Positions 3,668-59,500 of a DNA stretch of 64,000 bases are shown here, piece by piece. The stretch's first letter is position 1. Every line of letters begins with the position of its first letter. Location of the stretch: contig CM041465.1 of NCBI GenBank assembly GCA_023213395.1, forward strand, positions 126,239,741 to 126,303,740, in the 5' to 3' direction. The position numbers were made by a program, and so were the translations under genes. A model generated the notes under the pieces. That model was given only the letters and a program-made list of their open reading frames with translations. It made no database searches and was not told where the DNA came from. Origin of the DNA: Cycas panzhihuaensis. Taxonomy: Eukaryota > Plantae > Cycadophyta.

Positions 3668-4166
3668 GATCACCTCTCTCATCTAATGGTTAAATCTAGG
3701 TTCAAAGAAAGTGATCTATCTTATTTGTAAAAGAATAAGTACTTTGAGATATTATGTATCTTGATGTATTTCGTATATGCAAGAAGATAATTTATATCTT
3801 CTTGTTATTTAGGAGATTAAAGTCAAATAATTATTGTTGAACTAATTTCTAGGTGTGATGTTGATGTACTCTAAAGTAAATAAATGGCAATTCATTATTT
3901 TGAATCAAATAAGAAAACCAATGACAAAAATGAGTTAAATTTAAGAATTAAAATGTTTACTAGACGAATAAAGATCGTAGAAGCTGTTTTCTTTCATTGC
4001 GTTTGGACGTTACTAATATTGACAACACAACATAAATGATGCACTATCAGGAGTGAATGATTCCCATGGATTACATCTACATTAATTGTAGTTTGTAGAA
4101 ATGGTGCTTCAAAGCTTCGTTAGCTGAAAGACGTTCCCTTGGGTCAAACTTCAACAAACCTCGAAG
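3668..4166 (-). pseudogene. LAMMER kinase 3'-end fragment (last ~27 codons + 3' flank), monomer copy
   Basis: Aligns to 21132-21620 and switches to copia RT at CGAAG|ATGG (4166/4167). Confidence 0.9.
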
Positions 4167-5609
4167 ATGGTGTGTTGTTTGAAGAAAACCTCTTCTTTAA
4201 GATCTCTATTGAGGAAAGTACCCTTCATATCCATTTGCTAAATATGCTAATTAAATTAGATTGCTAAGGACATAACCAAATGGAATGTGATCACATTGGC
4301 TACCTGTGCACAGGTCTTATCATAATCAATCCCTTCTTGTTATTTAAAACCTCTTGCTATAAGGTGAGCTTTGTGAGTGTCATACTTTGTAAGACCTTTT
4401 AGCAGTTATGGGAGGAGGAGCATCCATTAATAATTGTTATACCTATTAGGATTTAGTTGAATGCTAGTGGCTTCCACCTGAAGTTCATCAACTAAAATTG
4501 GAGGTAAAGTTATACTTTCTTGAGTTGTTGATGTAGATGCTACTGGAATCGATGAAGGAGCTGGAGTGTAGGAGGAGGCTAGTTTTGGTGGCTCAACAAT
4601 TTGTCCAAGAGTAACTTAAGATACAAAAACTACTTCTATTGCTATAATATAAGGTTGAGGTGAAGGTAGGTCCTATGAATCTTTATAAATATTATATCCC
4701 GTGGTACGTAAACTTGGTTACCAACTATGTCAAACACTTTATAGGCTTTACAACCAAGTACATAGCTAAGGAAGATGCATTTCCAGCTCTTGTCATCAAG
4801 CTTCTTTTTGTTTTCCTTTGAAATATATTTATATTCCATGCATCCAAAGATTTTCACGAGTACTACCGATGGTTTCTGACCTGACCAAACTTCTTCAAGA
4901 GTAATATTCCTAACTGCGATTCTAGGACTCATGTTGGTTAGATAAGTAGTTATGGTTGTGGCATCAACCCAAGATCTGGTGGTAAGATTTGCAACACTAA
5001 GCATGGCTTTTCCTTTATTTATCAATGTCTAATTCATTCTTTTGACTACACGATTTTGTTGAGGTGTGTGGGGAGTTGGGAACTAATGTTGGATGCCATG
5101 TTCCTTGCCCAAAATGTTGAACTGATTAGGAATATACTCACCACCATTATCAGATCTAAGCAGCTTGATTATCATTCTACTTTTGTTTTCTATGGCAGCT
5201 TTGAACACTTTAAATTTATTTAGGATTTTATACTTATTTCTCAGGAAATAGACATACATTTTCCTTGAGAAGTCATCTATGAATGTGATGAAATGCCAAT
5301 TTTTATTGGGTGGTTAGACAGGTACCAACCCGCAAATTTCTGGGTGGACAATCTCTAACGACACTAAGGATCTCCATGCATTCTTAGAAGGAAAATGTTC
5401 TTGTGAGCTTTTCTATTAGGCAAGCCTCACATATGTTGTTGTACCTCTTAATTTTATGTAAACCATGTACCATTTGGAGCTTAAACATGAGTTCCAAGCT
5501 TTACATGTTTAAATGACTTAGGCATTAATTCTATAGGTATACTTTGGAGCTATTTGAGCTGATAATTTCCTTTCAATATGAGAATTCACCTGGTTCTTAT
5601 ATATAAAGG

Positions 5610-5614
5610 GACTC
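5610..5614 (+). other. Left target-site duplication GACTC
   Basis: GACTC flanks both ends of the nested element. Uninterrupted monomers have a single GACTC (GGGGACTCTTCATTAATG). Confidence 0.95.
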
Positions 5615-5911
5615 TGAAAAGAGTGGATCTATCCTTCATCTCCATGCACTAAACACAAAGGCAAACATGGGAGCAAGAGAGACTTGAGAGAAAGAAAGTA
5701 GCTCTCACAAAATGGGGAGGTAAGAATGAATCTCCTCCATTGAGCTTTACTTTTATATTGAGAGAGGGAGCATTTGAGTTAGGTGAAATGAAATTACACA
5801 TAATGCACATGAAAGTGCATTTCACTTAAGTGATCTAATTTAAAGTTCACTTAAGACCCTTTTTCGAAATAATCAACTAATGTAATGACCTTATGTCATT
5901 AACCCTTTTCA
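5615..5911 (-). repeat. 3' LTR (297 bp)
   Basis: TG...CA ends. Differs from 12947-13244 by 4 substitutions and one 1-bp indel (manual comparison). Confidence 0.96.
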
Positions 5912-5922
5912 ATCTCCCCCTT
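5912..5922 (-). other. Polypurine tract
   Basis: Minus strand AAGGGGGAGAT immediately precedes the 3' LTR. Confidence 0.9.
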
Positions 5923-6210
5923 AATGGTAGAAGGTCATTTCATTCTATTTTATTCTATCCTATGAGGTCTTCATTTGAGCCTCTTACAAAGGAAACTAGT
6001 ATGATACTTTTGTGGGAAACCCTCATGGGGAAGAAAACCCACAAATTTTCTAATCTACTAACCTGGCTCAAAGGCTCTTTAAATGTAGCGAGATAGCCAA
6101 TCAAGACAATAAATTTTGTAGCTGAAATCTCATCGAGTCTCCATATACCATTTGGTCATCCCCCATGCCCTTTCAGGTTTTCACAGGTTCTGATTTTCCA
6201 AAATGATACA

Positions 6211-6315
6211 ACCCTTATCCTTTCGCGTCCACATGGGGTTTTCACGAGTGGGATAGAGCAGAGACTTACTCTTGTCCTTCCGCGCCCACAAGGGGTTTTC
6301 ACGAAGAAGATAGAG
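6211..6315. repeat. Two imperfect ~57-bp tandem copies in the copia 3' UTR
   Basis: ACCCTTATCCTTTCGCGTCCACATGGGGTTTTCACGAG (6211) vs ACTCTTGTCCTTCCGCGCCCACAAGGGGTTTTCACGAA (6268). Confidence 0.75.
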
Positions 6316-6344
6316 TATGATGGTCCTATTGTCATCTCCTTCAA

Positions 6345-9300
6345 TCAGTCAGAGATGGAGGCCCTAAGTAGAGTTGCTTTCAGCTGTTCAAACTTCACCC
6401 TCTTCAGTGGTTTGGTGAAGATATCGGCCACTTGATCTGCTGTGGGGCAGTACTCCAATTGAATTGTTCCATCATGAACTAGTTCTCTAATCCTGTGGAC
6501 TTTTGTACTTATATGTTTGGTACGATCATGAAATACATGATTTTTAGCCATCTGGATTGTAGATTGATTATCTACATGTAAGCTAGTAGAACTTGTTTGG
6601 GTGGCATTTAATGTATTCAACAATTTTCTAAGCCATAGCACCTCCTTGCTTGTCTCAGAAGCAACAATGTACTCAGCTTCAGCAGTTGAGTCTGCAACTA
6701 TCTTCTGCCTTCTGGATCTCCATGATATTGGTGTTGTTCCAAGAAATGTTACGTACCCAGACGTAGATCTTCCTGTGTCTTTATCTCCGTGATGCGAGTG
6801 CATGTATGCATAAAGTTTAAATTACGCATTGGGTTCATACAATGGACCATATTTGCTAGTCGTCTTTAGGTACCTCAACACTCGTATTGCAGCTTGCCAA
6901 TGATTCTGCTTAGGATTTGTCATGAATCTTGCAAGAATGTCGACAGTGTGCAATATCGGCCTTGTGTTGGTAGTATAGATGAGACTACCTACAAGTTGCA
7001 CTGTAGAGTGTTAAGTCCGCCTCCCTATTGTCACCATCAACCGAGAGCTTAATGTTAGGCTCCATAGGTGTATCCACCGGTCGAGCACCTTCCAACCTGA
7101 AACTTTGTCAAGATCGTTGATATATTTTTCTTGGGAGAGAAAGATTTTGCCATCCTTTTGAGTTACTTCAATTCCCAAGTAATATTTCATCAACCCGAGG
7201 TCGACAATTCAAAAGTTTTAGCAAGGCCTTCTTCATTTGGTGATTACATGCTCATTATTCCCGTTATGAGCATGTCATCCACAAAGATTAAGAGGTAAGT
7301 GACTTTATCATTTTGGCGCTTGATGAATAATGTTGCATCAATATCTTGATAGTCACAAACCTCATATCCAAGTTGCCTCATTCTTTCAGACAACTTGGTA
7401 AACCAAGCACGAGGGGCTTGCTTTAGGCCATACAAGGACTTTTTGAGCCTACAAACTTTATGCTCCTGATCGTCAATCTCATATCCTTCTGGCTGAGCCA
7501 TGTAAATTTCTTCTTTAAGGTCCCCATTGAGAAATGCGGTCTTAACATCAAGTTAGTGGATTTTCCAACCCTGTTGAGCAGCCAAGGCTATAAGAGTTCT
7601 GATTGTAGGCCACTTGGTTGTAGGAGCAAAGATTTCAGTGTAGTCAATACCTTCCCTTTGCGTGAATCCTTTGCTACCAACCTCGCCTTATGTTTTTCTA
7701 GGGTGCCATCTGATCTATACTTGTTTTTGAACACCCATTTATTTTGAACTACCTTTCTTCCAAGTGGTAGATCAACAAGCTCCCATGTACCGTTCTTAAT
7801 AAGAGATTGATACTCTTCGTTCATGGCATTTCTCCAAGCTGCATGCTTTACAGCTTCTTGGTACGTTAGGGGCTCTTCATTAAGAGTAAGATGCAGTTCT
7901 GCTGGTTCAAGCTCAATGGAAAGTGATTCATGCATCCTTGCTCTATGGGCACTTCTAGTGCCAGTTTTGCCTACCTCATCTGGTCGCATCTCCTTGTGTA
8001 GCTAGTAGGCTTCACGAAAACCTCGAGTTGGGAATGACGTTTTCATTTCCACAACCTCTTGATCTTCGTTTTGATCCTGAAAAGGATCATGTGAAATATT
8101 TGGCACGAAGGAAGTTGACGATGCTGGAGAAGATGGGCCAGCCACAGATGTTGGAGAAGATGATCCTTCTGCTATGGCTTTGCCTTTGTCAACTTGGATA
8201 TTCACAAATGATGGTGCTGGATGTGTACACATTGGATTGGAGTCACAGCTTGTATCCTCCGAGGCTCTATTGTCAGATTCCAAGATTTTAAGCATCTTTT
8301 CAAAGATCTCCCCTAAATTTTAGAACTGACATCAAATTCAGTAGCATCATTAAATCAGTATGAAGGTGTCTTGGAGTCAAGTCTGAGTAATTGATCTTCA
8401 GTCTCTGCAAAGATAACATCTCTAGTGATGATGATTTTGCGCTCTGAAGGTATAAAAACCTTGTATCCCTTTTTGTCCATAGGGTATCTGACAAAGATGC
8501 CTTTGATGGCTCTATCTTGGAGCTTATTTCTATGTTCCTGCAAAATATGAGCATAACAAGTAGAGCCAAAAATTCTGAAGTGCGAGATAGAGGGGGTTTG
8601 TCCATACCACATTTCATGTGGAAAGGGGCCGAGCTTGGAGGGACTAACAGTGTTGATGCAATACACATCAGTCCATATAGCCTCAGCCCAAAGATAGATA
8701 GGGACATTCTTATATACCAGCATAGCACGAGCCATATTCATGATGGTCCTGTTCATACGCTCGGCAACTCCATTTTGCTGGGGTGTACCTGTAACAGTGG
8801 TCTGATGTTTGATTCCACGTTGACGTAGGTACGATTCAAACTCATTGGAAGTGTACTAGCCACCATTGTCAGTCCTGAGTATTTTGATATTGAATCCAGA
8901 TTCATTTTCCATGCGGGCCTTGAAAGCTTGAAACATAGAAAAAGCTTCATCTTTCTTTGCAAGAAAAGCAACCCATACTTTCTTGGTAAAATCATCAATG
9001 AAAGTAATATAGTACCACTTCTGTTTGATAGAAGGGATGGGCATAGGACCGCATATATCAGAGTGTACAAGCTGCAAAGGTTGGGTAGATTTCCACTGAC
9101 TACGAGGAAAGGGTTGTCTTTGAGATTTAGCAATAATACATGCTTCACATTTAAAGGGCTTCGAGGGGAACTTAAGCAAACCAGGAAGAGTGTCTTGTAG
9201 TTCTCTTAAATGATCAATTTTGATATGGCCCATATGATCATGCCATAGAGCTGCTTGGGACAACTTTTGAGGAGTCAGGGTTGTGGTAAAAACAAATTCA

Positions 9301-10883
9301 TCATCAGCATAGTTGGTTTCAGAGGATGGTGAGCCAGTTAGGCGAAAAAGTTTGCCATCAAGAATTCCGGTCATAACCACAGCATTTGAAGGAGGGTGAA
9401 TGACACAGAGAGTTTGATTGTTTGTAGTTACACTCAGATCAAATCCACGAGAGACAAGGGTGGACAGGGAGAGCAAATTCGCTCAGAAAGGTGAATATAT
9501 AAAACATCAACAAGTGTAAAACTGGAAGGCACAGGGAGTTTCAGCAAACTGCTCCAAGTCCTTTGGTGGCCGAGATGATTTGTCAGCCATGTGTACAACA
9601 CCACGAACTTCAGAGTCAAAATCTTGAAAGAACTGGCGATGACAAGTCATGTGTTATGTTGCTCCAGTATCCATGATCTACGATGAAGTATTTGAGGTAG
9701 CACTATTTGCAACTCCAAGTGGTGAAGGCAAAAGTGAATAAGCATAGCCACAATGAGCCTCAATATACTTAGTGGATCTATCAACAACATTTGATGAAGT
9801 GGTCCCAATTCTTTGAAGGTGTGCATGAGCAAATTGCTCCACCAAAAGCATCTTCAAAGAAGTATTATCAACATTATGTGCACCATGGCAATCGTTGATA
9901 ACTTGGTAGTTTGTTGGTGGCGATTACGCAATTTTTGGCATAATGTCCTCTTCTATTACACCTTTGGCACACGATTGTTTGATTTCCAGTCCAAGTATTA
10001 AATTTGGCCGGATTGTCTCTCGATTCTTGGATCTAGGTCCAGGTTGATTATTTTGCCCTTGGCCTTGAGACTGTTTTTGTTGGAATTGAGGAGCCTGTTG
10101 ACTAAGAGGACGTTGTCCTTGTTGTCTACCTCTTCCTCTTCCACGGGAATTACCACCTCTACGAGAGTATTGACCTTGATTTTTGGTGTAACAAAGATCT
10201 TCTTCCACTTTAAAAGTAGCATCAATTGGATCTGATGTAGTGGCAAAGTTGGTATCAAAGGTCTTATCAAATTCAATGAACTTATCAACAAGATCCTCAA
10301 AGTTTAGGGTCTTTAAAGTTCCACTGGATTGAAGACTCCCCAATAGATTTTTATAATCTGGGATATGGAGACATGACTGAATCAAGAAAGCCCATGTAAT
10401 GCATTGAGTTTTAAAATCTTTATCAATGGCTTGCTTGATTGGACGAAGGAGATTGATTGTCTCACTTGCATGTCCTTTTTGCATTTTCAATTTGTTCATC
10501 TTCAGCACTAAGTGAACAAATTCTAAGTCTGATTTAGTGTCAAAGTTCTTCTTAAGAACTTCAAGAACTTTCCATGCTATATCATGTATAGCTTCATCAA
10601 TGAGATTATGTAGGGAATAATCAGTGACAAACAGTATCCCTGCACGGATTTTATCATCATCAAGTTCCCATTGGCGTTTAGCTACAGCTTCAGTGGGAGC
10701 AGTTGGAGCACCTCCTCTTCAAGCGATTGTGGTAGTTGTAGAATGCAATGGTGGTGTAGGTTGTAAGTGATCTCTCCATAGACCTTCATACTTTGGCAAG
10801 ATTTCGACACCAATGAACCACATGTCCCAATTTTCTTTCCCTTTTAGAATGCAGTTCACATTTTGCTTGAACTGTGAAGACAT
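6345..10883 (-). pseudogene. Copia gag-pol polyprotein, disrupted by frameshifts and stops
   Basis: Start MSSQFKQNVNCILKGKENWDMW at 10883. CCHC knuckle CQRCNRRGHYAKNC (~9930-9970); protease MDTGAT (~9660); integrase LWHDHMGH..CEAC, LVHSDICGP, LRTDNGG; [20 protein letters not shown] and FVDD; RNase [26 protein letters not shown]. Confidence 0.93.
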
Positions 10884-11047
10884 TGTGTCTTTTTAGAAGG
10901 GAAGAAATGAACAAGGGACTATAAAAGTGATGGTAATAAATGACCGATCACTATTTACAAATGGGAAATGTAATGAAGTAGTGTAGAAGAAGGAAGAAGA
11001 AGTGAGAATAGTTGCTCAAAGATGAAGGGAGCAACTTAGAGAAAAGT

Positions 11048-11175
11048 CACCAACACTTGTGACAAATATTAACCTGACGCAGCAGGAATATGAGAAGCAC
11101 TATGATAAAAATTGGCCACTAACACTTGTGGCAAATATTAACCTGAAACAGCAGGAATATGAGAAGCACTATGAT
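11048..11175. repeat. Two-copy tandem repeat (69-bp period) in the copia 5' leader
   Basis: CACCAACACTTGTGACAAATATTAACCTG...GAGAAGCACTATGAT at 11048 and a near-identical copy at 11117. Confidence 0.85.
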
Positions 11176-11839
11176 TGTGATTACACTATGGATCACTTTT
11201 TACAAATAAGTAAGTGATCAATATACAAGATTGTAGGCCAATGTAAAAGTTGACATCATTGGGTTTACACAACTTGAAACTCGAATGTAGGATGCGTAAT
11301 CAACCCAATAACCTCTAACTTATGTCCAACGTGTAGTTGAGGTTGTTGAAGGGATGCCTAGGCTTTTAGTAGAATTAATTTGGCCTTCACCCGCGATACC
11401 CGCAATCGTTCTTGGTGATGAAATCCAAGTCACAACGGAGCCCAGGTACTCCCAATCCTCACCCAGTTCACTAATGAGCAGCTATATACCTCCTCTAAAG
11501 AGTGGTACGTGCATACCCATGGCTATGACGGATATTGGATTGGGTATATTTTAATCTTGTATTAAAGTTTCAGTTTTCCCATTTGGTTATCAGGATGATC
11601 CCTGATTGAGGCACGATGGTATGGCTAACCAAACCTCACCAATATTCCGGTTTAGTCCAGTCCCAACTTGAAACCCACACCTCCTTTATGGCACTAAGAT
11701 TACGCCAACCAAGGTATCTCAACCTTGGCGAGTGTGTGAACAGGTACAAGATGGCAGAAAATAACGTACGTGATGCGTTCCTTTTAGGAAGAGTGAAAAG
11801 ATTATTGAATTGTATCAAACGTACATTTAACTGAAAATA

Positions 11840-11930
11840 ATGCTTGCTTGGAGTGCTTTTGGAGTGCTTGCTTGAAGTGCTTGCTTGAAGTGTCTTTGGT
11901 GTGCTTGCTTTGAGTGATTTTAGAGTGCTA
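11840..11930. repeat. Short imperfect minisatellite (GAGTGCTTGCTT-like)
   Basis: Repeated GTGCTTGCTT/GAGTGCTTTT units are visible directly. Confidence 0.75.
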
Positions 11931-12091
11931 AAATGCAATGCTAATAAGTGAGTGAGGACACCAGATATTGCTCTGATCCAGGTGTTTTTTTCTCACTTTT
12001 ACAATGGGCTTTTAAGCCTTATAAAAAGGAAGAAATTTTCTTCACTTTTTTGTTTCCTTTTTTTTTTTGTTAATACAAAAAAAAAGTACTC

Positions 12092-12470
12092 TTCACTAAA
12101 TCTGCAATAACTTTCTCCCACGATGCCGAAATGGAGTGCCGGTTTTTGTGCTGCAAACTAGACTCAGACATTCATCTCCAGGAAATGGAATCAGGTCCAA
12201 ATGAGTTCTGGAAAGTTTTTGACAGCCCCGAAAAGTTAGGAAATGATATTTTTCCAGAATTCTTACTAAAAATAACTGCTGTTCACTAAAACAGCAATAA
12301 CTTCCTCATACGACATCCAAATTAGGTGCTAATTTTTTCATTGGAAAGTAGACTCAGAGCCCCATCTTTGACAATTAGAATCACTTCAATTGGATCTCTG
12401 TAGAAGATTTTGCAGACCTGTGAAGTTTAGTAATCAAATTGTATTTCTGTAGAAATTTCAGCTTGCTAAT
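12092..12470. repeat. Diverged ~190-bp tandem repeat (2 copies) in the copia 5' leader
   Basis: TTCACTAAA...GCAATAACTT...ACGA...TAGACTCAGA...GAATCA at 12092 and 12282. The right boundary is approximate. Confidence 0.7.
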
Positions 12471-12932
12471 ATCTCATTAACACATGATACCATATGAAAT
12501 TTCCATCATTTTTTGATCACCAGGATCCCAATATGGGCAAGGTGAGAGCATACAATGATAGATATTTTCAATGGCTCAAAATTCTTTAAAAAAAATTTGG
12601 GTAAAACTCCCTTACAATCATTCTTCTAAATCTCGGAAAAATTTCTACAAGATTCCCCTTGTTAAATGGACAAAAAAGGGAAAAGAAAAAGAAGAATGAG
12701 ATAGTATGAATGGCCAGCAAAGGATTGGAATCCTTGGGCCTTACAACTCCTTGTATTATGCTTCCAAACCTGCAAAAGAGAAAGGAAAAGCAAACAATAC
12801 AAAATATACTATCATAATAACTTGAAAATATTTCTAAATTCACTTTCACAATCTCCTTCACCACATGGATTGTGGGGGAGAAGGAAGTGATGGCTCCATT
12901 GCAAGTGCAAGTGGGGAATATGAAGGAAGCAA

Positions 12933-12944
12933 GCTATGATACCA
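12933..12944 (-). other. Primer binding site (initiator tRNA-Met type)
   Basis: Minus strand TGGTATCATAGC, one mismatch to the canonical TGGTATCAGAGC, 2 nt from the 5' LTR. Confidence 0.9.
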
Positions 12945-12946
12945 CA

Positions 12947-13244
12947 TGAAAAGAGTGGATCTATCCTTCATCTCCATGCACTAAACACAAAGGCAAACAT
13001 GGGAGCAAGAGACACTTGAGAGAAAGAAAGTAGCTCTTACAAAATGGGGAGGTAAGAATGAATCTCCTCTATTGAGCTTTACTTTTATATTGAGAGAGGG
13101 AGCATTTGAGTTAGGTGAAATGAAATTACACATAATGCATATGAAAGTGCATTTCACTTAAGTGATCTAATTTAAAGTTCACTTAAGACCCTTTTTTCGA
13201 AATAATCAACTAATGTAATGACCTTATGTCATTAACCCTTTTCA
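12947..13244 (-). repeat. 5' LTR (298 bp)
   Basis: Near-identical to 5615-5911, adjacent to the PBS, and followed by the TSD. Confidence 0.96.
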
Positions 13245-13249
13245 GACTC
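13245..13249 (+). other. Right target-site duplication GACTC
   Basis: Matches 5610-5614; the monomer sequence resumes here. Confidence 0.95.
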
Positions 13250-14037
13250 TTCATTAATGACTTCATTTACCTTATCAATTTGAGCTGTGTTTGGAATTGA
13301 ACAAGCTTCATTTTATGGAGTAGTTGTAAGGGGGATACCACCCAACCTATATAGTCCACCATCTTCATGTCTTATGGCCACAAGCTTGCATGTTGTATGA
13401 TTTGCGATTCTACTAATGCCCTAGACAAAGAGGACATCTAAATTCTGTTTGTTTATTTCATTAATAGAGAGAAAGTTCATCTTCAGGTGCAAGGAATATA
13501 TTATTGATGTGGTGCCTCATACTGGAGTCCTTCAAAGCTATTGGATCCCTACCAATTTTGGTCATTATCGTAAGTCAAATTATCCCCAAATGTGATATTT
13601 TGAGTATCGACTGGGCGGGTCTCTTCTAACATTTTTTCTAATCTGATCATATATCTCGTTGTACCTGACTCAAGGAGTCATGCATCCTCATCAAGTTGAT
13701 CCATATGATCATAGTATAGTAGGCATCTAACTAGAGTAAGAGGCCTAAAGGAGTTAAGACCAGAGGATCCATATGATCATAGGTAGGTTCTTGGAAAATT
13801 ATCAATAGCAGTGACTCATCTCACATAAGTTTGAGATAGGCTAATAGTACATGCATTTAACTCCAACTAGCATCAAGCTCTAATAGGTAAAATAAAAAGA
13901 GGCCACTGCTCTCAATAAGATGCATAGAGTTCACTCAGTTGTTGAGGCCACACATATAAACGCATAGTGAGGGTAGATGCCCACCATTAGGCCAATCAGA
14001 ATATGAATCGTAAGACTCTTCTCACATAAGGCCAAAA

Positions 14038-14536
14038 GATCACCTCTCTCATCTAATGGTTAAATCTAGGTTCAAAGAAAGTGATCTACCTTATTTGTAA
14101 AAGAATAAGTACTTTGAGATATTATGTATCTTGATGTATTTTGTATATGCAAGAAGATAATTTATATCTTCTTGTTGTTTAGCAGATTAAAGTCAAATAA
14201 TTATTGTTGAACTAATTTCTAGGTGTGATGTTGATGTACTCTAAAGTAAATAAATGGCAATTCATTATTTTGAATCAAATAAGAAAACCAATGACAAAAA
14301 AGAGTTAAATTTAAGATTCGAAATGTTTATTAGATGAATAAAGAGCGTAGAAGTTATTTTCTTTCATTGCATTTGGACGTTACTAATATTGACAACACAA
14401 TGTAGATGATGCACTATAAGGAGCGAATGATTCCCAGGGATTACATCTGCATTCATTTTAGTTTGTAGAAATGGTGCTTCAAAGCTTCGTTAGCAGAAAG
14501 ACATTCCCTTGGGTCAAACTTCAGTAAATCTCGAAG
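14038..14536 (-). pseudogene. LAMMER kinase 3'-end fragment, monomer copy
   Basis: Homologous to 21132-21620 with the same junction to copia RT. Confidence 0.9.
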
Positions 14537-42802: not shown

Positions 42803-43208
42803 TGATCACCTCTCTAATCTAATGATTAAATCTAGGTTCGAAAAAAGTGATCTGCGTTGTTTGTAAAAGAATAAGGACCTTGTCATATTATGTATCTTGA
42901 TTTATTTTGTATATGCAAGAAAATAATTTATATCTTTTTGTCGTTTAGGAGATTAGAGTCAAATAATTATTGTTCAACTAATTTCTAGGCGTGGCGTTGA
43001 TGTACTCTAAAGGCAATTCATTATTTTGAATCAAATAAGAAAAATCATGACAAAAAACAATTAAATTTAAGAGACGAAATGTTTACCAGACGAATAAAGA
43101 GCGTAGAAGCCGTTTTCTTTCATTGCGTTTGGACGTCACTAATATTGACAACACAACGTAGACGACGCACTATCAGGAGCGAATGATTCCCAGGGATTAC
43201 ATCTACGT

Positions 43209-45259: not shown

Positions 45260-46236
45260 GAAGGATTACAGTGGGGTTTATCAGAGATGATGGAAACATG
45301 ATATGAACCGTCATGAACAACCTCAATTACTGCAAAAGTACCGTGCCAACAAGAATGAAATTTATCGATGCAAATTCATCATTAACTTTGTCAAAAAGAA
45401 AAATGAGTCCAATGGGGTAAAATAAAGAAAGAAAAACAGTTTGATCATATTTTAAATTAGGTTGCATTTTGATATCTTCTAGATTGTTTAAGTAACACAG
45501 GCTATCTTCACCAACCTTTTCTAGCTTAATGAGCCAAGTCTCAAATGCTATGCAATTCAAAAGTTGGTTGCAAATATCTGAATAAAGGGAATGAATTTTA
45601 CTTTTAATGGGAATTATAGATTCTAGACCATAAACTAGAGAAGATGTGACAAATCCATTAGCTATCATGACAATGGATCAATTGAGATATAAGGATGGAT
45701 AAATTTAACAATGCTAATAATTTTTGTATTCGTGAATGATAGTTTTCAAGAGTGATAATCAAGAGAAGGGTGATACGAGACAATGTGAAAGGTAAGGTAG
45801 ATACACGTGTTATATTTGGCAATGGAGCTATAAATGTTGAATATATTGTCATATAAATATGAGATGAGAATAATTGGTAGGGAAACAAGTTGGGGATGAG
45901 AAGTATATGGGCGGTGGCGGTGTAAGTGAACGCAATGAATGTGGGCACTTTAGAAATAGAGTCATGGAGTATTAATTCAATGAGTATTAAGGGTTTTTTC
46001 ATAAATATGATGATCTCGATACGCAAGTAGTGATTGTCTAGATGATGGTAAAAGAAATAATGTTAGGAGGTTAACCATAATCAAAGGTTATAAGAGAGTT
46101 AAATTCAAGAATGGTACGGACTTGTATATAATAATGGTTATTAAAATTGACATCTATAAAGACTAAACAAAATGACAACTATTAGGTAATACAAGGTAAT
46201 ATGGTAGTCAGTAGCTAGGTGTGTGTAATGTTACTA
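45260..46236 (-). mobile_element. Degenerate Ty3/gypsy integrase fragment (duplicate)
   Basis: Copy of 23590-24560; ORF 45327-45668. Confidence 0.65.
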
Positions 46237-46509
46237 GCAAGCGTAACATTATGGGAAGTAAAAGTGATAAGCATGATGCAATGGTGCTATTTTAAGGCAT
46301 TTACTTAGATACATACAATTACCTCATAATTCTATGGGGTTGGTAGGGAGTTAATGAACGATTGCATTGTAAGATCTCCATCAACGTGACTTAAACAATT
46401 TGCATAAACTTTTCACTATTTATATACACACATAAGCAAGGAAGTTAATAGAGATTACCTAAGAGTTATCAAAGTACAAAAACCTTTGCATGGGTCAAGG
46501 TTTAGAAAT

Positions 46510-49500: not shown

Positions 49501-51065
49501 TTCACCTGGTTCTTATATATGTGGGACTCTTCATTAATGACTTCATTTACCTCATCAATTTGAGCTGTGTTGGGAATTGAACAAGCTTCATTTTATGGAG
49601 TAGTTGTAAGGGGGATACCACCCAACCTATATAGGCCACCATCTTCATATCTTATGGCCACAAGCTTGCACGTTGCATGATCTGCGATTCTACTAATGCC
49701 CTAGACAAAGAGGACATCTAAATTCGGTTTGTTTATTTCATTGATAGAGAGCAAGTTCATCTCCATTTCAGGTGCAAGGAATATATTATTGATGTGGTGC
49801 CTCATATTGGAGTCCTTCAAAGCTATTGGAGCCCTACCAATTTTGGTCATTATCGTAAGCCAAATTATCCCCAAATGTGATAGTTTGAGTATCGACTGGG
49901 CGAGTCTCTTCTAACATTTTTTCTAATCCGATCATATATCTCCTTGCACCTGACTCAAGAAGCCATGCATCCTCATCAAGTTGTGCAGAAAGAGCTGTAA
50001 AAAATAGGTGATGGAAGGAGGAATCCTAATTGTGTACCACATTACTTCCGTATTATTTATTATTATGCTGGTTTCTTTAATTTTTGATAGTGAATTACTG
50101 CTTATTTTGAGGTCTTTCTCCTTGAGCAGGTCTCAGATTCCAATTATGTTGGTAGAATTGGCCTTGTGGTTGGAATGATGACCCTTCTTATTGTTGAATA
50201 AGGCCTCTTTATTGGAAATATGGGCCTCCTTGTTACAAAATAAGACCTCGCTATTATGGAAACGGGGCTCTTTGTAGAAGGCACGATCCTCCTTAGTAAT
50301 ATCCTTGTCTCTATTAAGAGTAACTAGGACCTCTTTATTGATATGAGGGTGGTCCTTATTAGTAGGTTAGGCCTAATCGTTGATAATAAGAGGTAGCTTA
50401 TTAGAAGCGAGGCCCATATGATTGACTCAATTGATTTTACAAGAGTTGTGAATCAACTTGTCCTCACTTGCATTAACAGAAGTGTCTTTTTTTATCATAG
50501 TAGAGGCAACTGACATCTGGTCTAACCTATTAATTCTTTTAAAGTTGTGCATATGGCTGGTATTGAGACTGCCGATGCCAATGAGTTAGACGGGAGGAGG
50601 AGGTGTTAATTGGTTATTACTTTTAGGTTGGTTGTTGATATGGCTCTTGGGATATGGTCAGAGAATCTAAGTGTTGAGTTAGATCTTGGTGTTGACTAAG
50701 TTGTTGAGTTGATCTATTGATAGTCTTACGCTTTTCTGAGTTATGGGCTGTAAAGGTAGGAGCGGGGTTAGATATACATGTCGCCCCAAGTCAGTCAGTT
50801 GAGTATATTCTCCTCTTATAACAAGAGTTCCTCGCAGGTTGTGAAGTCTATTTTGGAATAATTACCATTTAATTTGGAAACAAAGGAGTTATATTCTATA
50901 GGTAGGATGTCAATGATGCTAGAGATTAAATCATGGTTTGAAAGTGGTTCATTAAGGATTATAAGTTAGTTCCTAGTTATTTTGATTTTAATCAAGTGGT
51001 GTGCAACGCTGCAAAAAAATGTATACTTTTATCAAAACGTTATGAACTTAAAGAAGATAAGTCAT
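46510..51065 (-). mobile_element. Old degenerate copia element with putative 3' LTR (46510-46931), RNase H and RT (duplicate)
   Basis: Copy of 24834-29389. Confidence 0.85.
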
Positions 51066-52519
51066 GAAAATAAGATTAATTTTAGATTCACGTATTCATT
51101 ATAGGGTGTACCCTATGCTTGGCACAAATAATTATACCCAACTAAGACATGGGAGAATATTATGAAGTAATTTAAGGAGATATTGTAAAAGTTTTTAAGT
51201 AATGAGGTAGTGGAGTTATCTCTCAAGGAAATGAGATAAAGGCTAGTAGAATTACTTTTAATACGTATATGAAAAATAAATATTAAAGTTGTAAGTATTA
51301 TGAATGGAGAAAAAATCATGGATTATAATAAGAGAAACTATTTTATAAATGGGCTAAATTCTAAAGTAAGGGCCATAATGGTGATTCATTCCTTGAAATG
51401 CTTCCATTTCACACATGAGTTGGTATTACACTTTGAGAAAGAGATGGGCATTTAAAAGGGCAGCCATAAACCTTATTATTTAGATCACAAGATAAAATGT
51501 AATAATTTAGAAGCCAAAATATAAATAAACCTTGCTATTAAGAAACAAAAATAAAGGAGACCTCAAAAGTAGAAGCCTTTAAAAAGGAAGTCACAAGATT
51601 AAAGTTATAAAGAAAGAAACATCAGCTTACTAAGGAGAAGAAGAATAAAAAAATATAAGGGTAACGAACCGTAATTGAAGAAGTGGTGTCACATTTGTGA
51701 TAATAATTCATATTCTAGTAAAAAATGTGACCTAAATGAGAGGAATAATATGGTAAAAGAGTAAAGTACATGGTGTTATATTTATGATATGTATAACCAT
51801 AATATGAATAAACACTATTTTAATATATGTAAAACAAACCAATACGGTACAAGTTATGGAAGAAGGAACAACTTAACCATGATGCAATATACTAATGACG
51901 CAGGAAGGCATGTGAAAAAATAATAATGCATGAAGAGAGAGTAAAGGAAATGTACTAAACTAACTAAAATAATAGAGATAAAATTGATCTATCCTCATAG
52001 AAAATACCTATAGAGAGATCAAACATCACCTAATAAGAAGGCTGTTAAAATCTAAGAGGTCCACTAGAGCATATATGCCTAAACTATTGAGAAAAGTATG
52101 TGCTTGGCCTATTGCGTATACCCTTTATAAAGAAGAATATCCTATCCTAACCCATACTCTTAAATATACCTAAAACACTAGACTCAATCTTAAAATATGA
52201 GAAGGGACTAACTAGAGTAAGAGGCCTAAAGGAGTTAAGACCACATGATCCATATGATCATTAGGTAGGTTCTTGGAAAATTATCAATAGCAGTGACTCA
52301 TCTCACATAAGTTTGAGATAGGCTAACAGTACATGCATTTAACTCCAACTAGCATCAAGCTCTAATAGGTAAAATAAAAAGAGGCCACTGCTCTCAATAA
52401 GATGCATAGAGTTCACTCAGTTGTTGAGGCCACACATATAAACGCATAGTGAGGGTAGATGCCCACCATTAGGCCAATCAGAATATGAATCATAAGACTC
52501 TTCTCACATAAGGCCAAAA

Positions 52520-53018
52520 GATCACCTCTCTCATCTAATGGTTAAATCTAGGTTCAAAGAAAGTGATCTACCTTATTTGTAAAAGAATAAGTACTTTGAG
52601 ATATTATGTATCTTGATGTATTTTGTATATGCAAGAAGATAATTTATATCTTCTTGTTGTTTAAGAGATTAAAGTCAAATAATTATTGTTGAACTAATTT
52701 CTAGGTGTGATGTTGATGTACTCTAAAGTAAATAAATGGCAATTCATTATTTTGAATCAAATAAGAAAACCAATGACAAAAAAGAGTTAAATTTAAGATT
52801 CGAAATGTTTATTAGATGAATAAAGAGCGTAGAAGTTATTTTCTTTCATTGCATTTGGACGTTACTAATATTGACAACACAATGTAGATGATGCACTATA
52901 AGGAGCGAATGATTCCCAGGGATTACATCTGCATTCATTTTAGTTTGTAGAAATGGTGCTTCAAAGCTTCGTTAGCTGAAAGACATTCCCTTGGGTCAAA
53001 CTTCAATAAACCTCGAAG
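52520..53018 (-). pseudogene. LAMMER kinase 3'-end fragment, monomer copy
   Basis: Counterpart of 30846-31341. Confidence 0.9.
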
Positions 53019-55975
53019 ATGGGGTGTTGTTTGAAGAAAACCTCTTCTTTAAGGTCTCTATTGAGGAAAGTACCCTTCACATCCATTTGCTAAATATTTC
53101 GATTAAATTAGATTGCTAAGGACATAACCAAACGGAATGTGATCACATTGGCTACCGGTGCAAAGGTCTTGTGATAATCAATCCCCTCTTGTTATTTAAA
53201 ACCTCCCGCTATAAGGCGAGCTTTACGAGTGTCATACTTTCTAAGGCCTTTTAACATTTATGGGAGGAGGAACATCCATTAATAATTGTTATACCCATTA
53301 GGATTTAGTTGAATGCTAGTGGCTTCCACCTGAAGTTCATAAACTAAAATTGGATGTAAAGTTATACTTTCTTGAGTTGTTGATGTAGATGCTACTGGAA
53401 TCGATGAAGGAGCTGGAGTGTAGGAGGAGGCTAGTTTTGGTGGCTCGACAATTTGTCCAAGAGTCACTTAAGATACAAAACCTACTTCTACTGCTATAAT
53501 ATAAGGTTGAGGTGGAGGTAGGTCCTATAAATCTTCTATAAATATTATATCCCGTGTTACGTAAACTTGGTTACCAACTATGTCAAACACTTTATAGGCT
53601 TTACAACAAAGTACATAGCTAAGGAAGATGCATTTCAGGCTCTTGTCATCAAGCTTCTTTTTGTTTTCCTTTGAAATATATTTATATTCCATGCATCCAA
53701 AGATCTTCACGAGTACTACCGATGGTTTCTGACCTGACTAAACTTCTTCAAGAGTAATATTCCTAACTACAATTCTGGGACTTATGTTGGTTAGATAAGT
53801 AGTTATGGTTGTGGCATCAACCTAAGATCTGGTGGTAAGATTTGCAGGACTAAGCATTGCTTTTCCTTTATTTATCAATGTCTAATTCATTCTTTTGACT
53901 ACACGATTTTGTTGAGTTGTGGGGAGATGGGAACTGATGTTGGATGCCATGTCCCTTGCCCAAAATGTTGAACTGATTAGAAATATACTCACCACCATTA
54001 TCAGATCTAAGGAGCTTGATTATCATTCTACTTTTCTTTTCTATGGCAGCTTTGAACTCTTTGAATTTATTTAGGGTTTTATACTTATTTCTTAGGAAAT
54101 AGACCTACATTTTCCTTGAGATGTCATCTATGAATGTGATGAAATGCCAGTTTTTATTGAGTGGTTAGACAGGTATCAACCCGTAAATTTCTGGGTGGAC
54201 CATCTTTAACGGCGCTGGGGATCTCCATGCGTTCTTAGAAGGAAAATTTTCTCGTTAGTACTTTTCTATTAGGCAAGCCTGACATATGTTGTTGTACCTC
54301 TTAATTTTATGTAAACCGTGTACGCTTTGGAGCTTAAACGTGAGGTCCAAGCTTTGCATGTTTAAATGGCTTAGTCATTAAATCCATAGATATACTTTGG
54401 AGCTATTTAAGATGACAATTTCCTTTCAATATGAGAATTGACCTGGTTCTTATATACAAGGAGACTCTTCATTAATGACTTCATTTACCTTATCGCTTGA
54501 GCTGTGTTGGGAATTGAACAAGCTTTATTTTATAGAGTAGTTGTAAGGGGGATACCACCAAACCTATATAGGCCACCATCTTCATGTCTTTTGGCCACAT
54601 GTTTGCATGTTGCATGATCTGCGATTCTAGTAATGCCCTAGCTAAAGAGGACATCTAAATTCGGTTTATTTATTTCATTGATAGAGAGCAAGTTCATCTC
54701 CATTTCGGGTGCAAGGAATATATTATTGATGTGGTGCCTCGTATTGGAGCACTACCGATTTTGGTTATTATCGTAAGTCAAATTATCCCCAAATGTGAAA
54801 GTTTGAGTATGGATCATGCATGTCTCTTCTAACATTTTTTCTAATCCGATCATATATCTCGTTACAACTGTCTCAAGGAGCCATGCATCCTCATCAAGTT
54901 GTGAAGAAACAGCTGCAAAGAATAGGTTATGGAAGGAGGAATCCTAATTGTCTACCACATTACTTCCCTATTATTTATTATTATGCTGGTTCCTTTAATT
55001 TTTGATAGTGAATTACTGCTTATTTTGAGGTCTTTCTCCTTGAGCGTGTCTCGATTCCAATTGTGTTGGTAGAATTAGCCTTGTGGTTGGAATGATGACC
55101 CTTCATATTATTGAATAAGGCCTCTTTATTAGAAATATCAGCCTCCTTGTTACAAAATAAGACCTCGCTATTATGGAAACAAGGCTCTGTAGAAGGCACG
55201 ATCCTTCTTAGTAATATCCTTGTCTCTATTAAGAGTAACTAAGACCTCCTTGTTGATATGAGGGTGGTTCTTATTAGTAGATTAGGCCTAATCGTTGATA
55301 ATAAGAGGTAGCTTATTAGAAGCGAGGCCCATATGATTGGCTCAATTGATTTTACAAGAGCTGTAAATCAACTTGTCCTCACTTGCATTAACTAAGTGTC
55401 TTTTCTAATTATAGTAGAGGCAACTGACATTTGGTCTCACCTATTAATTCTTTTAAAGTTGTGCATATGGATGGTATTGAGATTGCTGATGCCAATGAGT
55501 TAAACGGGAGGATGAGGTGTTAATTGGTTATTACTTCTTAGGTTGGATGTTGATATGGCTCTTGGGATGTGGTCAGAGAATCCAATTGTTGAGTTAGATC
55601 TTGGTGTTGACTAAGCTGTTGAGTTGATCTATTGATAGTCTTACGCTTTTATGAGTTATGGGTCAGAAGGTAGGAGCGGGGTTTGATATACATGTCGCCC
55701 TAGGTCAGTTGAGTATATTCTCCTCTTATAACAAGAGTTCCTCATAGGTCGTGAAGTCTATTTTGGAATAATTACCATGTAATTTGAAAACAAAGGAGTT
55801 ATATTATATAGATAGGATGTCAGTGATGCTAGAGATTAAATCATGGTTTAAAAGTAGTTCATTAAGGATTATAAGTTAGTTCCTAGTTATTTTGACTTTA
55901 ATCAAGTGGCGTGCAACACTGCCAAAAAAGGTATACCTTTATTAAAACTTTATGAACTTAAAGAAGATAAGTTAT
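53019..55975 (-). mobile_element. Degenerate copia fragment (monomer copy)
   Basis: Counterpart of 31342-34319. Confidence 0.87.
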
Positions 55976-56521
55976 GAAAATAAGATTAATTTTAGATTCA
56001 CGTATTTATTATAGGGTGTACCCTATGCTTGGCACAAATAATTACACCCAACTAAGACATGGGAGAATATTATGAAGTAATTTAAGGAGATATTGTAAAA
56101 GTTTTTAAGTAATGAGGTAGTGGAGTTATCTCTCAAGGAAATGAGATAAAGGCTAATAGAATTACTATTAATACGTATATAAAAAATAAATATTAAAGTT
56201 GTAAGTATTATGAATGGAGAAAAAATCATGGATTATAATAAGAGAAACTATTTTATAAATGGGCTAAATTCTAAAGTAAGGGCCACAATGGTGACTCATT
56301 CCTTGAAATGCTTCTATTTCACACATGAGTTGGTATGCAACCATAAACCTTATTATTTAGACCACGAGACAAAATGTAATAATTAATAAGCCAAAATATA
56401 AATAAACCTTGCTATTAAGTAACAAAAACTAACCTCCTCCTACACTCTAGCTCCTTCATTGAATTTATTTAGGGTTTTATACTTTTTTCTCAGGAGATAG
56501 ACCTACATTTTCCTTGAGAAG

Positions 56522-59500
56522 AGATTTAATCATTAGATTAGAGAGGTGATCATTTCCTTGCACCCGAAATGGAGACGAACTTGCTCTCTATCAAGGAAAT
56601 AAACAAACATCATTTAGATATCCTCTTTGGCTAGGGCATTAGTAGAATCGCAGATCATGCAACATGCAAACCTCTGGCTACAAGACATGAAGATGGTGGC
56701 CTATATAGGTCAGGTGGTATCTCCATTACAACTACTCCATAAAATGAAGCTTGTTCAATGCCCAACATAGCTCAAATTGATAAGGTAAATGAAGTCGTTA
56801 ATGAAGAATCCCCTTGTATATAAGAATCGGGTGAATTCTCATATTGAAAGGAAAATGTCATCTCAGATAGCTCCAAAGTATACCTATGGAATTAATGCCT
56901 GAGTCATTTAAAACATGCAAATCTTGGACCTCATATTTAAGCTCCAAATGGTACATGGTTTACATAAAATTAAGAGGTACAACAACATATGTGGGGCTTG
57001 CCTAACAGAAAAGCACTAACGAGAAAATTTTCCTTCTAAGAACACATGGAGATCCCCAGCGCCGTTAGAGATGGTCCATCCAGAAATTTACAGGTTGGTA
57101 CCTGTCTAACCACTCAATACGAACTCGCATTTCATCACATTCATAGATGACTTCTCAAGGAAAATGTAGGTCTATTTCCTGAGAAATGAGTATAAAACCC
57201 TAAATAAATTCAAAGAGTTCAAAGCTGCCATAGAAAAGGAAAGTAGAATGATAATCAAGCCCCTTAGATCTGATAATGGTGGCTTTGAGTATATTTCTAA
57301 TCAGTCCAACATTTTGGGCAAGGAACATGGCATCCAACATCAATTCCCAGCTCCCCACACACCTCAACAAAATGGTGTAGTCAAAAGAATGAATTAGACA
57401 TTGATAAATAAAGGAAAAGCCGCGCTTAGTGTTGCAAATCTGACCACCAGATCTTGGGTTGATGCCACAACCATAACTACTTATCTAACCAACATAAGTC
57501 CTAGAATTGCAGTCAGGAATATTACTCTTGAAGAAGTTTGGTCGTCGAAAACCATCGATAGTACTGCAAGATCTTTGGATGCATGGAATATAAATATATT
57601 TCAAAGGAAAACAAAAAGAAGCTTGATGACAAGAGACTGAAATGCATCTTCTTTAGCTATGTACTTGGTTGTAAAGCCTATAAAGTGTTTGACATAGTTG
57701 GTAACCAAATTTATGCAACACGGGATATAATATTTATAGAAGATTCATAGGACCTACCTTCACCTCAACCTTATATTATAGCAGTAGAAGTAGTTTGTGT
57801 ATCTTAAGTGACTCTTGGACAAATTGTGGAGCCACCAAAACTAACCTCCTCCTACACTCCAGCTCCTTCATCGATTCCAGTAGCATCTACATCAACAACT
57901 CAAGAAAGTATAACTTTAGCTCCAATTTTAGTTGATGAACTTCAGGTGGAAGCCACTAGCATTCAACTACATCCTAATGGGTATAATAATTATTAATGGA
58001 TGTTCCTCCTCCCATAACCACTAAAAGGCCTTACAAAGTATGACACTCGCAAAGCTCGCCTTATGGCAAGAGGTTTTAAATAACAAGAGGGGATTGATTA
58101 TGACAAGACCTTTGCACCGGTAGCCAATGTGATCACATTCCATTTGGTTATGTCTTTAGCAATCTAATTTAATGGACATATTTAACAAATGGATGTGAAG
58201 GGTACTTTCCTCAATAGAGACCTTAAAGAAGGGGTTTTCTTCAAACAACACCCCATCTTCGAGGTTTGTTGAAGTTTGACCCAAGGGAACGTCTTTCAGC
58301 TAAGGAAGCTTTGAAGCACCATTTCTACAAACTAAAATGAACGTAGATGTAATCCCTGGGAATCATTCGCTCCTGATAGTGCGTCGTCTACATTGTGTTG
58401 TCAATATTAGTAACGTCCAAACACAATGAAAGAAAACAGCTTCTACGCTCTTTATTCGTCTAGTAAACATTTCGATTCTTGAATTTAACTCTTTTTTGTC
58501 ATTGGTTTTCTTATTTGATTCAAAATAATGAATTGCCATTTATTTACTTTAGAGTACATCAACATCACACCTAGAAATTAGTTCAACAATAATTATTTGA
58601 CTTTAATCTCCTAAACAACAAGAAGATATAAATTATCTTCTTGCATATACAAAATACATCAAGATACATAATATCTCAAAGTACTTATTCTTTTACGAAT
58701 AAGGTAGATCACTTTCTTTGAACCTAGATTTAACCATTAGATGAGAGAGGTGATCTTTTGGCCTTATGTGAGAAGATTCTTACGATTCATATTCTGAATG
58801 GCCTAATGGTGGGCATCTACGCTCACTATGCGTTTATATGTGTGGCCTCAACAACTGAGTGAACTCTATGCATCTTATTGAGAGCAGTGGCCTCTTCTTA
58901 TTTTACCTATTAGAGCTTGGTGCCAGTTGGAGTTAAATGCATGTACTATTAGCCTATCTCAAACTTATGTGAGATGAGTCACTGCAATTGATAATTTTCC
59001 AAGAACCTACCTAATGATCATATGGATCCTGTGGTCTTAACTCCCTTAGGCCTCTTACTCTAGTTAGTCCCTTCTCATATTTTAAGATTGAGTCTAGTGT
59101 TTTAGGTATATTTAAGAGTGTGGGTTAGGATAGGATATTGTGGTTTATAAAGGGTATGTGGAATAGGGGAAGGAGATAGTTTTGTGAATAGTTTAGGGAT
59201 ATATGGTGTAGTGGACGTGTTAGATTTTGTGACCTTCTTATTATGTGATGTTTGATCTCTCTATAGGTATTTTCTATGAGGATAGATCAATTTTATCTCT
59301 ATTATTTTAGTTAGTTTAGTACATTTCCTTTACTCTCTTCATGCATTATTATTTTTTCACATGCCTTCCTGCGTCATTAGTATATTGCATCATGGTTAAG
59401 TCGTTCCTTCTTCAATAACTTGTACCGTATTGGTTTGTTTTACATATATTAAAATAGTGTTTATTCATATTATGGTTATCCATATCACAAATATAACACC

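Follow-up and report, generated by a model that had tools for sequence, protein, structure and literature searches.

Gene-bearing macrosatellites have been well studied in mammals (DUX4, USP17, and TSPY) and, to our knowledge, have hardly been described in plants. In the D4Z4 array at human 4q35, the intronless retrogene DUX4 lies in a kilobase-scale tandem repeat composed partly of relics of repeats and transposable elements (TEs), and an inverted partial unit exists near it; the RS447/USP17 and TSPY arrays are further examples of this type. In plants, Sobo of Solanum bulbocastanum is a retrotransposon-derived macrosatellite with a 4.7-kb monomer, and we know of no host gene carried by macrosatellites of this type. 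With regard to silencing by repeats, Arabidopsis PAI1-PAI4, maize Mu killer, and rice LGC-1 are cases comparable to the soybean I locus. The latter is an inverted CHS repeat cluster that represents natural inverted-repeat silencing (PMC3804491, PMC6710647). At the soybean I locus and its kin, siRNAs and a phenotype have been demonstrated, and the inverted arms lie over coding sequence. In Drosophila, the amplified Stellate (crystal) gene, which resembles CK2 beta, is paired with Su(Ste), a set of amplified truncated or TE-containing homologous repeats (PMC7874207, PMC10567549). The Su(Ste) repeats, which lie on a different chromosome, extend over the Stellate coding region and act through piRNAs and through antisense RNA arising from a hoppel insertion.

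The window analyzed here is a stretch of 64,000 nucleotides from Cycas panzhihuaensis (contig CM041465.1), and positions 1-62092 of it form a single macrosatellite. We read this locus, with a probability of roughly 0.6, as a gene-bearing macrosatellite that was built by unequal crossing-over, in which truncated kinase tails are passive by-products. The original prediction had placed the beginning of the array at position 3668; in fact, the array already fills the window from base 1. It comprises seven direct S units (~4.9 kb), one partial S unit, one inverted S unit, and two K units (7 kb), which are arranged as follows:

1-222: end of a unit
223-5140: S1
5141-15508: S2
15511-20392: S3
20393-27375: K1 unit
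27376-32316: S4
32317-37214: S5
37217-42063: S6
42064-49053: K2 unit
49054-53991: S7
53992-56432: S8 (partial)
56522-62092: inverted block

The repeats are far beyond chance. The ten direct starts of the segment named A are spaced by 4.85-4.94 kb, by 6.98-6.99 kb in K units, and by 10.37 kb in S2, which holds a copia insertion. Sequence identity falls into tiers, with 99.4% between K1 and K2, 93-99% among S units, and 88-92% between K and S units. In addition, K-S-S-S forms a higher-order repeat with a period of 21.67 kb, whose copies (20393-34771 and 42064-56427) are 99.05% identical across the 14.4 kb remaining of the second copy; identity is 99.4% between S4 and S7 and 97-98% among S3, S6, and the inverted S unit. 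A whole kinase gene occurs in 2 of the 11 units, one of them with an open frame. TRF reported no repeats on the array because the unit period exceeds its 500-bp limit, and scans for Rfam families and tRNAs across the entire window gave no matches.

The Cycas array resembles D4Z4 in that an intronless putative retrogene lies in a kilobase-scale tandem repeat built partly of repeat or TE relics, and in that the array appears epigenetically distinct from the gene (in Cycas, as judged by CpG footprints); head-to-tail units of at least 1 kb, higher-order structure, and a complete ORF in units were all found. However, the host is a plant, the gene encodes a kinase, and only one unit in four keeps it, the remaining units being a deletion derivative with just the tail (the last 27 codons). 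Similar to Sobo, the array has a comparable monomer size, is partly retroelement-derived, and has a higher-order structure attributable to unequal exchange. With Stellate/Su(Ste) it shares the logic of a target and homologous repeats as well as a kinase-related amplified gene, and the Cycas tails match the kinase 3' end at 88-92% identity, roughly 40 differences being diagnostic of K-type versus S-type tails. Unlike the Su(Ste) repeats, the tails are interleaved with the gene, their homology to it includes only 81 nt of coding sequence plus 3' flank, and no antisense promoter was seen; piRNAs are, as far as we know, absent from plants. As at the soybean I locus, gene fragments that have become duplicated in inverted orientation by natural events could yield dsRNA and siRNAs against intact paralogues, whereas the Cycas arms are mostly TE-derived and non-coding, and the target 3' end shows no methylation footprint.

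Two full kinase copies had been predicted, and both are present:

21537-22709, minus strand: K1 kinase, an intact intronless LAMMER/CLK (AFC-type) reading frame of 390 aa (Pkinase 7e-50; CLK2 2e-90)
43209-44380, minus strand: K2, the same kinase, frameshifted (1-nt loss in the G run at 44002-44004)

Only K1 is open, and the expectation of two complete copies holds for their presence but not for their frames. In K2, a change from GGGG to GGG at 44002-44004 shifts the frame, which could be a homopolymer sequencing error, and there is one further E>K change. Based on domain, signature, and catalytic residues, K1 is assigned to the LAMMER/CLK (plant AFC) kinases, with predicted activity. The catalytic motifs VAIKVIR, HTDLKPDN, DFGNATF, and YRAPEVV are kept, and the LAMMER signature reads EHLAMMQRVLG (compared to EHLAMMERILG, subdomain X), with E>Q at a column conserved in at least 95% of relatives. 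Besides the Pkinase match, the best solved relatives are CLK2, CLK4, CLK3, and CLK1 (2e-90 to 1e-81), and the ORF runs without interruption and aligns colinearly with CLK2 and AFC proteins along 98% of its length. The top matches in a protein database search were all AFC1-3 or dual-specificity kinases, none of them above 66% identity in a collection that did not contain the proteins of this genome. In the kinase tree, the sequence groups (SH-aLRT 100) with Ginkgo Gb_36852 and three other sequences, and its end branch is 1.07 versus 0.14 for Ginkgo. Plant AFC genes have many introns, and the kinase, as an intronless copy of a many-intron parent, has the form of a candidate retrogene. No poly(A) tract or flanking target-site duplication was recognizable in the kinase 3' flank, and both may have decayed. 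Literature searches gave nothing specific on a LAMMER retrogene or a LAMMER array. If the kinase copies are expressed, they would amount to a regulator of SR-protein phosphorylation that is amplified and may vary in copy number.

The kinase 3' end recurs in every S unit, where it is referred to as segment T:

21128-21620, minus strand: K-type T segment, the final 27 codons together with 409 bp of 3' flank, present in every S unit (20 CpG)
3664-4166, minus strand: S-type tail
14034-14536, minus strand: S-type tail
18914-19416, minus strand: S-type tail, in S3
30842-31343, minus strand: S-type tail
35738-36240, minus strand: S-type tail
40596-41095, minus strand: S-type tail
52516-53018, minus strand: S-type tail
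58257-58759, plus strand: inverted tail fragment, with kinase sense on the plus strand, within the inverted block

All eight truncated copies described in the original prediction were thus located, each with the last 27 codons and ~410 bp of 3' flank, and their fusion to a decayed copia fragment was confirmed by Pfam SH3_retrovirus matches (1e-13 to 1e-14) and by tblastx colinearity with copia pol. The copy said to be inverted is indeed so, but it is not isolated and sits within a 5.6-kb inverted block. Every tail begins at the L codon of LRGLLKFDPRERLSANEALNHHFFKLK (followed by the stop) and adjoins the copia fragment; the codons have decayed in S tails, with the stop lost in S1 and a 1-nt deletion in S6. 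The junction between segments B and T, ...CACCCCATCT/TCGAGG..., which has the copia INT/RT on one side, is common to all S units (8 of 8 tails) and shows a 2-nt (CT) microhomology to both parental sequences. Because all eight tails share one junction, a single deletion made the S unit, which then amplified. The array may be viewed as the birth of a satellite monomer from a gene locus: a single microhomology deletion came first, then amplification and duplication at the higher-order level.

The remainder of the units is derived from transposons or is non-coding:

25292-27669, minus strand: decayed LTR-less copia pol (INT, RT, and RNase H) that aligns colinearly with the young copia pol
16241-18913, no strand: segment X, 2.7 kb, non-coding and AT-rich (example in S3)
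5615-13244, minus strand: younger copia in S2 (298-bp LTRs, 98.3% identical; 5-bp target duplication)

The S units retain just the part of copia pol from INT to the N-terminal part of RT (segment B and the start of A). Segment X is found between A and T in S units and is absent from K units; its junction has a 2-nt microhomology and no terminal repeats, and it was either deleted from K or inserted in S. Neither segment X nor the 2.6 kb that separate RNase H from the kinase contain Pfam matches or long ORFs. The younger copia of S2 has broken ORFs and a tRNA-Met PBS at 12933-12944, which is the sole PBS found. An LTR-internal-LTR concatemer, or a kinase carried as cargo of an LTR element, was also considered and rejected: the unit has no LTR pair, PBS, or PPT, and the array is not such a concatemer because no LTR pair or PBS belongs to the unit. 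Within a K+S pair, no direct repeats were found besides A, T, and B.

We infer an order of events from the unit map and the identity tiers (K-K, S-S, and K-S), both of which fit it. An AFC/LAMMER kinase mRNA would have been retrocopied beside a 5'-truncated, LTR-less copia, and a block of ~9.7 kb (A-X-T-kinase body-copia) would then have become tandem. A deletion by microhomology end joining may have removed 4.78 kb from one copy, between the copia RT and kinase codon -27, and the product, the 4.9-kb S unit, would have been amplified, while the gene-bearing lineage would have lost the 2.7-kb X segment. A recent duplication of the 21.67-kb K-S-S-S block probably created the higher-order repeat. 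In its present state, the K-type kinase would be a maintained, probably expressed, and fast-evolving gene in a small unmethylated island, and the S units would be methylated filler, as suggested by CpG footprints in and around the following region:

21200-23600, minus strand: CpG-preserved island over the kinase, its 3' flank, and ~900 bp upstream (CpG o/e 0.6-1.7)

Across these 2.4 kb, CpG o/e is 0.6-1.7, compared to 0.2-0.45 around the island, and matches to a TATA-like motif (TATAAG, 22922-22917) and to CCAAT (23045-23041), which are motif matches only, lie within it. The K-type tail has kept all of its 20 CpGs versus 5-11 in S-type tails, and in segment T ten K CpGs read TG/CA in the S consensus, with none in the reverse direction. 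Elsewhere the asymmetry (kept in K and lost in S versus the reverse) is 5 versus 3 in A and 1 versus 2 in B; it is hence limited to the gene-adjoining segment, and S tails lost half over the same time. An intact, strongly diverged LAMMER kinase has thus apparently stayed open and CpG-rich amid repeat DNA with methylation-type decay, and it seems to be maintained. It is less probable, but deserves some weight, that the array is a dead satellite whose kinase copies are pseudogenes in heterochromatin, the frame and CpG island of K1 being left over from a fairly recent retrocopy or from gene conversion by a functional copy elsewhere. Consistent with this, the gene lies within a TE-derived array showing CpG decay, K2 is frameshifted, and K1 lacks 31 of the 177 highly conserved residues (DFGS>DFGN, HTDLKPEN>HTDLKPDN, and EHLAMME>EHLAMMQ among them), whereas canonical AFCs keep 95-99%, which could mean relaxed constraint en route to decay. 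However, the losses are graded: K1 retains 73 of 80 invariant columns, 73 of 97 columns conserved at 95-99%, and 146 of 177 conserved at ≥95%, and this better retention at invariant than at near-invariant columns points to a gradient of constraint. The VAIK, HTDLKPDN, DFG, and APE motifs are all preserved. The CpG asymmetry, being confined to the segment next to the gene, also speaks against a dead satellite. Moreover, when neutral decay was simulated across half of the K-S divergence (7.7% substitutions and 10 frameshifting indels per 2.1 kb), the ORF stayed intact in only 1.3% of runs (P ~0.013), a test with an effective n of 1, because K1 and K2 represent one recent lineage, and with an ascertainment bias towards an intact copy. 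On present evidence, the locus is a tidy case of repeat birth with one probably live gene. Two further features concern the inversion:

56522-62092, minus strand: inverted block, 5.6 kb, made up of an S unit, a K-type A segment, and a 33-bp T stub, all in reverse complement
56425-56521, no strand: patchwork inversion junction that connects the truncated S8 to the inverted block and consists of 38 bp of inverted B followed by 66 bp of direct A

The anatomy needed for a silencing system is in place. Each tail has 21-65 perfect 21-mers and 12-53 perfect 24-mers in common with the kinase 3' end, and two inverted arms of 1.66 kb (52047-53707 and 57568-59228), 95% complementary and 3.9 kb apart, include the tail. 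Read-through or hairpin transcripts of S tails, especially where direct and inverted blocks face each other, might be processed into siRNAs that cleave the kinase message or reduce its translation and in this way adjust the dosage of a kinase that is amplified and possibly selfish. Conflict genes are often amplified and fast-evolving, as this kinase is, and natural inverted-repeat silencing has precedents in plants, e.g., the soybean I locus (PMC3804491). Should the tails produce siRNAs, the locus would be a rare natural gene-plus-suppressor array in a plant. Nevertheless, we regard such a function as improbable. The tails have a single accidental origin, and their homology to the gene is preserved no better than the flanking segments: K-S divergence is 8.1% in T, 8.0% in A, and 7.4% in B, and the diversity of the tail 3' flank among S units (2.9% versus a unit average of 4.3-5.3%) lies inside the 1.9-5.9% span of 250-bp windows along the unit. 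No promoter or promoter-like LTR was found in S units, and no local hairpins in the units. In the K-type tail all 20 CpGs survive, whereas the S tails have lost theirs, a pattern that would not be expected had tail-derived 24-nt siRNAs methylated the gene 3' end in trans, and the CpG footprints argue against long-term trans methylation of the kinase by the tails; this counters RNA-directed methylation but not a purely post-transcriptional action. We consider it very unlikely that the array is a plant counterpart of Stellate/Su(Ste)-like conflict loci, in which a fast-evolving, amplified splicing-regulatory kinase acting in germline or gametophyte (dosage or drive) would be checked post-transcriptionally by siRNAs from interleaved tails and head-to-head inverted blocks. 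Overall, the sequence-only evidence leans to neutral repeat turnover, the alternative that the original prediction had itself named. There is also just one inverted junction, next to an assembly gap, and the block might itself be an assembly artefact, produced by a fold-back or by misjoining of a contig end at the gap, in which case no antisense copy would exist in the genome. The block is only 5.6 kb long and stops exactly at a gap of 500 N (62093-62592), and contig ends in long repeats are error-prone. Even so, an artefact appears unlikely: the block is not a fold-back of the adjoining sequence, its best matches being S3 (97-99%) for the S unit and K1 (98%) for the A segment instead of S7 or S8, and the 38-bp and 66-bp pieces at the junction come from elsewhere in the unit, a patchwork like that left by template-switch repair.

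A single tandem array fills the window from base 1 to a 500-N assembly gap (62093-62592) and is built of two types of unit. On the plus strand, the short (S) unit of ~4.9 kb consists of segments A (737 bp), X (non-coding, 2.7 kb), T (~495 bp, the tail shared with the kinase 3' end) and B (977 bp, copia-derived), and the kinase-bearing (K) unit of 6.98 kb runs A, T, a 4.78-kb body and B, without X. At the X junction, 2 nt overlap and terminal repeats were not found; X could have been deleted from K or inserted into S. Beyond the gap (62593-64000), the sequence has no homology to the array and is unique within the window; a 251-aa ORF at 62082-62837 was rejected as spurious, as it reads across the Ns of the gap.

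Units and inverted block of the array
223-5140, S1
5141-15508, S2
15511-20392, S3
20393-27375, K1 unit
27376-32316, S4
32317-37214, S5
37217-42063, S6
42064-49053, K2 unit
49054-53991, S7
53992-56432, S8, partial
56522-62092, inverted block of 5.6 kb, containing the inverted tail

Identity falls into tiers of 99.4% between K1 and K2, 93-99% among S units and 88-92% between K and S. Over 14.4 kb, 20393-34771 and 42064-56427 agree at 99.05%; identity reaches 99.4% for the S4-S7 pair and 97-98% among S3, S6 and the inverted S unit. K-S-S-S is therefore a higher-order repeat of 21.67 kb, and its duplication was recent. This order breaks down upstream (1-15508 compared with 20393-42063). The S2 tail resembles those of post-K units (99.0% to S7), and the X-T-B part of S2 is nearest to S5 (97.5%). 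The unit preceding S2 is not K but S1, which is only ~94% identical to every other S unit. Loss of a K unit ahead of S2, or a shift of the repeat register, may explain this.

Both full-length LAMMER kinase copies of the original prediction are present and nearly identical, but only that of K1 is open.

Kinase coding sequences
21537-22709, minus strand, K1, open frame of 390 codons
43209-44380, minus strand, K2, one E>K change, frame broken by GGGG>GGG at 44002-44004

The K2 lesion may be a homopolymer sequencing error. The K1 protein contains a Pkinase domain (7e-50) and keeps the VAIK, HTDLKPDN, DFG, APE and EHLAMMQRVLG motifs; its nearest solved relatives are CLK2, CLK4, CLK3 and CLK1 (2e-90 to 1e-81), and its database neighbours are all plant AFC1-3 or dual-specificity kinases, with identity of at most 66%. 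Plant AFC genes have many introns, and the K1 frame is colinear with such intron-rich relatives across 98% of its length without interruption, so K1 is an intronless copy, i.e., a retrogene; neither a poly(A) remnant nor a target duplication was recognisable at the K1 kinase. In the tree, the kinase groups with Ginkgo Gb_36852 and three transcriptome or Logan proteins (SH-aLRT 100), on an end branch of 1.07 compared with 0.14 for Ginkgo; this position makes the host a land plant.

Non-coding sequence differs between K and S by 7.7% and carries 10 frameshifting indels per 2.1 kb; in a neutral simulation over half of this divergence, a 390-codon frame survived in 1.3% of runs. K1 conserves 73 of the 80 invariant AFC columns and 146 of the 177 columns conserved at >=95%, of which canonical AFCs retain 95-99%; the kinase is therefore constrained, yet much relaxed or altered. 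The CpG observed/expected ratio is 0.6-1.7 across 21200-23600 (gene, 3' flank and ~900 bp upstream) and 0.2-0.45 in the surrounding repeat, and the CpG-rich stretch includes a TATA-like sequence (22922-22917) and a CCAAT box (23045-23041), both as motif matches only. At ten CpGs of K within T, the S consensus has TG or CA, with no case of the reverse (20 CpGs in K, 5-11 in S copies), whereas loss is symmetric in A (5 vs 3) and B (1 vs 2). Thus, the K gene domain appears to have been spared methyl-CpG decay, and the same sequence in S units does not. The window maximum of the ratio (1.68, 12 CpGs, 31% GC) lies at 21200-21500, in the first ~300 bp past the kinase stop, a peak unusual in a plant 3' flank that could mark a regulatory element or antisense promoter.

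All eight predicted tails, one of them inverted, were located; in T, the last 27 kinase codons are followed by 409 bp of 3' flank.

S-type tails
3664-4166
14034-14536
18914-19416
30842-31343
35738-36240
40596-41095
52516-53018
58257-58759, inverted

Their predicted fusion to decayed copia sequence was also borne out: B and the start of A, adjoining T, are decayed copia pol, with SH3_retrovirus matches in the copia-derived part and a tblastx alignment from 27669 down to 25292 at K1 that is colinear with INT, RT and RNase H of a younger copia. Read in the copia frame, the B|T junction gives FLNRDLKEEVFFKQHP, where the RT domain starts, and the fusion to kinase codon -27 does not keep this frame. 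One junction, …CACCCCATCT|TCGAGG…, is common to all S units, and its CT occurs in both parental sequences; therefore, one microhomology-mediated 4.78-kb deletion made the S unit, after which the tails would have multiplied passively. LTRs and a PBS are absent from K and S units alike, so an LTR concatemer was rejected and the kinase is not demonstrable element cargo.

The inverted kinase 3' end is present in the sequence, but as part of the larger block rather than as a lone tail. In reverse complement, this block comprises an S3-like unit (97-99%), then K-type A (98%) and 33 bp of T. Because it stops exactly at the assembly gap, it is probably rather than certainly genuine. Truncated S8 passes into it via 38 bp of inverted B and 66 bp of direct A, a patchwork more in keeping with template-switch repair than with a fold-back artefact. 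The block differs from its neighbours and copies no adjacent unit.

The observation of kinase, tails and inverted copy is thus confirmed. The proposal that the tails suppress the kinase fits the 21-65 perfect 21-mers common to each tail and the kinase 3' end, and the inverted repeat, whose arms (52047-53707 and 57568-59228, tail included) are 95% complementary and 3.9 kb apart. However, the tails all stem from one accidental event, their codons have decayed (the S1 stop is lost and S6 is frameshifted), and a search of the S units found no promoter, LTR or local hairpin. K-S divergence is even (T 8.1%, A 8.0%, B 7.4%), and tail diversity among S units is within the range of the unit (3' flank 2.9%, CDS part 5.9%, 250-bp windows 1.9-5.9%). 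The CpG asymmetry would also be unexpected had tail-derived 24-nt siRNAs directed methylation to the K-type tail, although the tails could still act post-transcriptionally, which leaves no CpG footprint. On balance, the sequence evidence leans towards the tails being repeats that arose as by-products and surround a kinase gene that is probably live and evolves fast.

The D4Z4/DUX4 array carries a retrogene in each unit (PMC5849414) and is likewise a gene-bearing macrosatellite, but here the gene is kept only in every fourth unit and the host is a plant. Stellate/Su(Ste) is defined by antisense transcription, small RNAs and derepression (PMC7874207, PMC10567549); the likeness seen in the sequence extends only to an amplified gene with homologous repeats. 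The closest plant precedent for inverted-repeat silencing is the soybean I locus, which acts through natural inverted repeats (PMC3804491).

The younger copia lies within S2.

Younger copia
5615-13244, minus strand, 298-bp LTRs 98.3% identical, 5-bp target duplication, tRNA-Met PBS (TGGTATCATAGC, 12933-12944)

Despite the similarity of its LTRs, the frames of pol and gag have already broken up into many pieces. In addition, X of S2 is short by ~2.15 kb (equivalent to 16441-18593 of S3; junction 13699-13714), which is a second deletion, private to the unit that also holds the younger copia.
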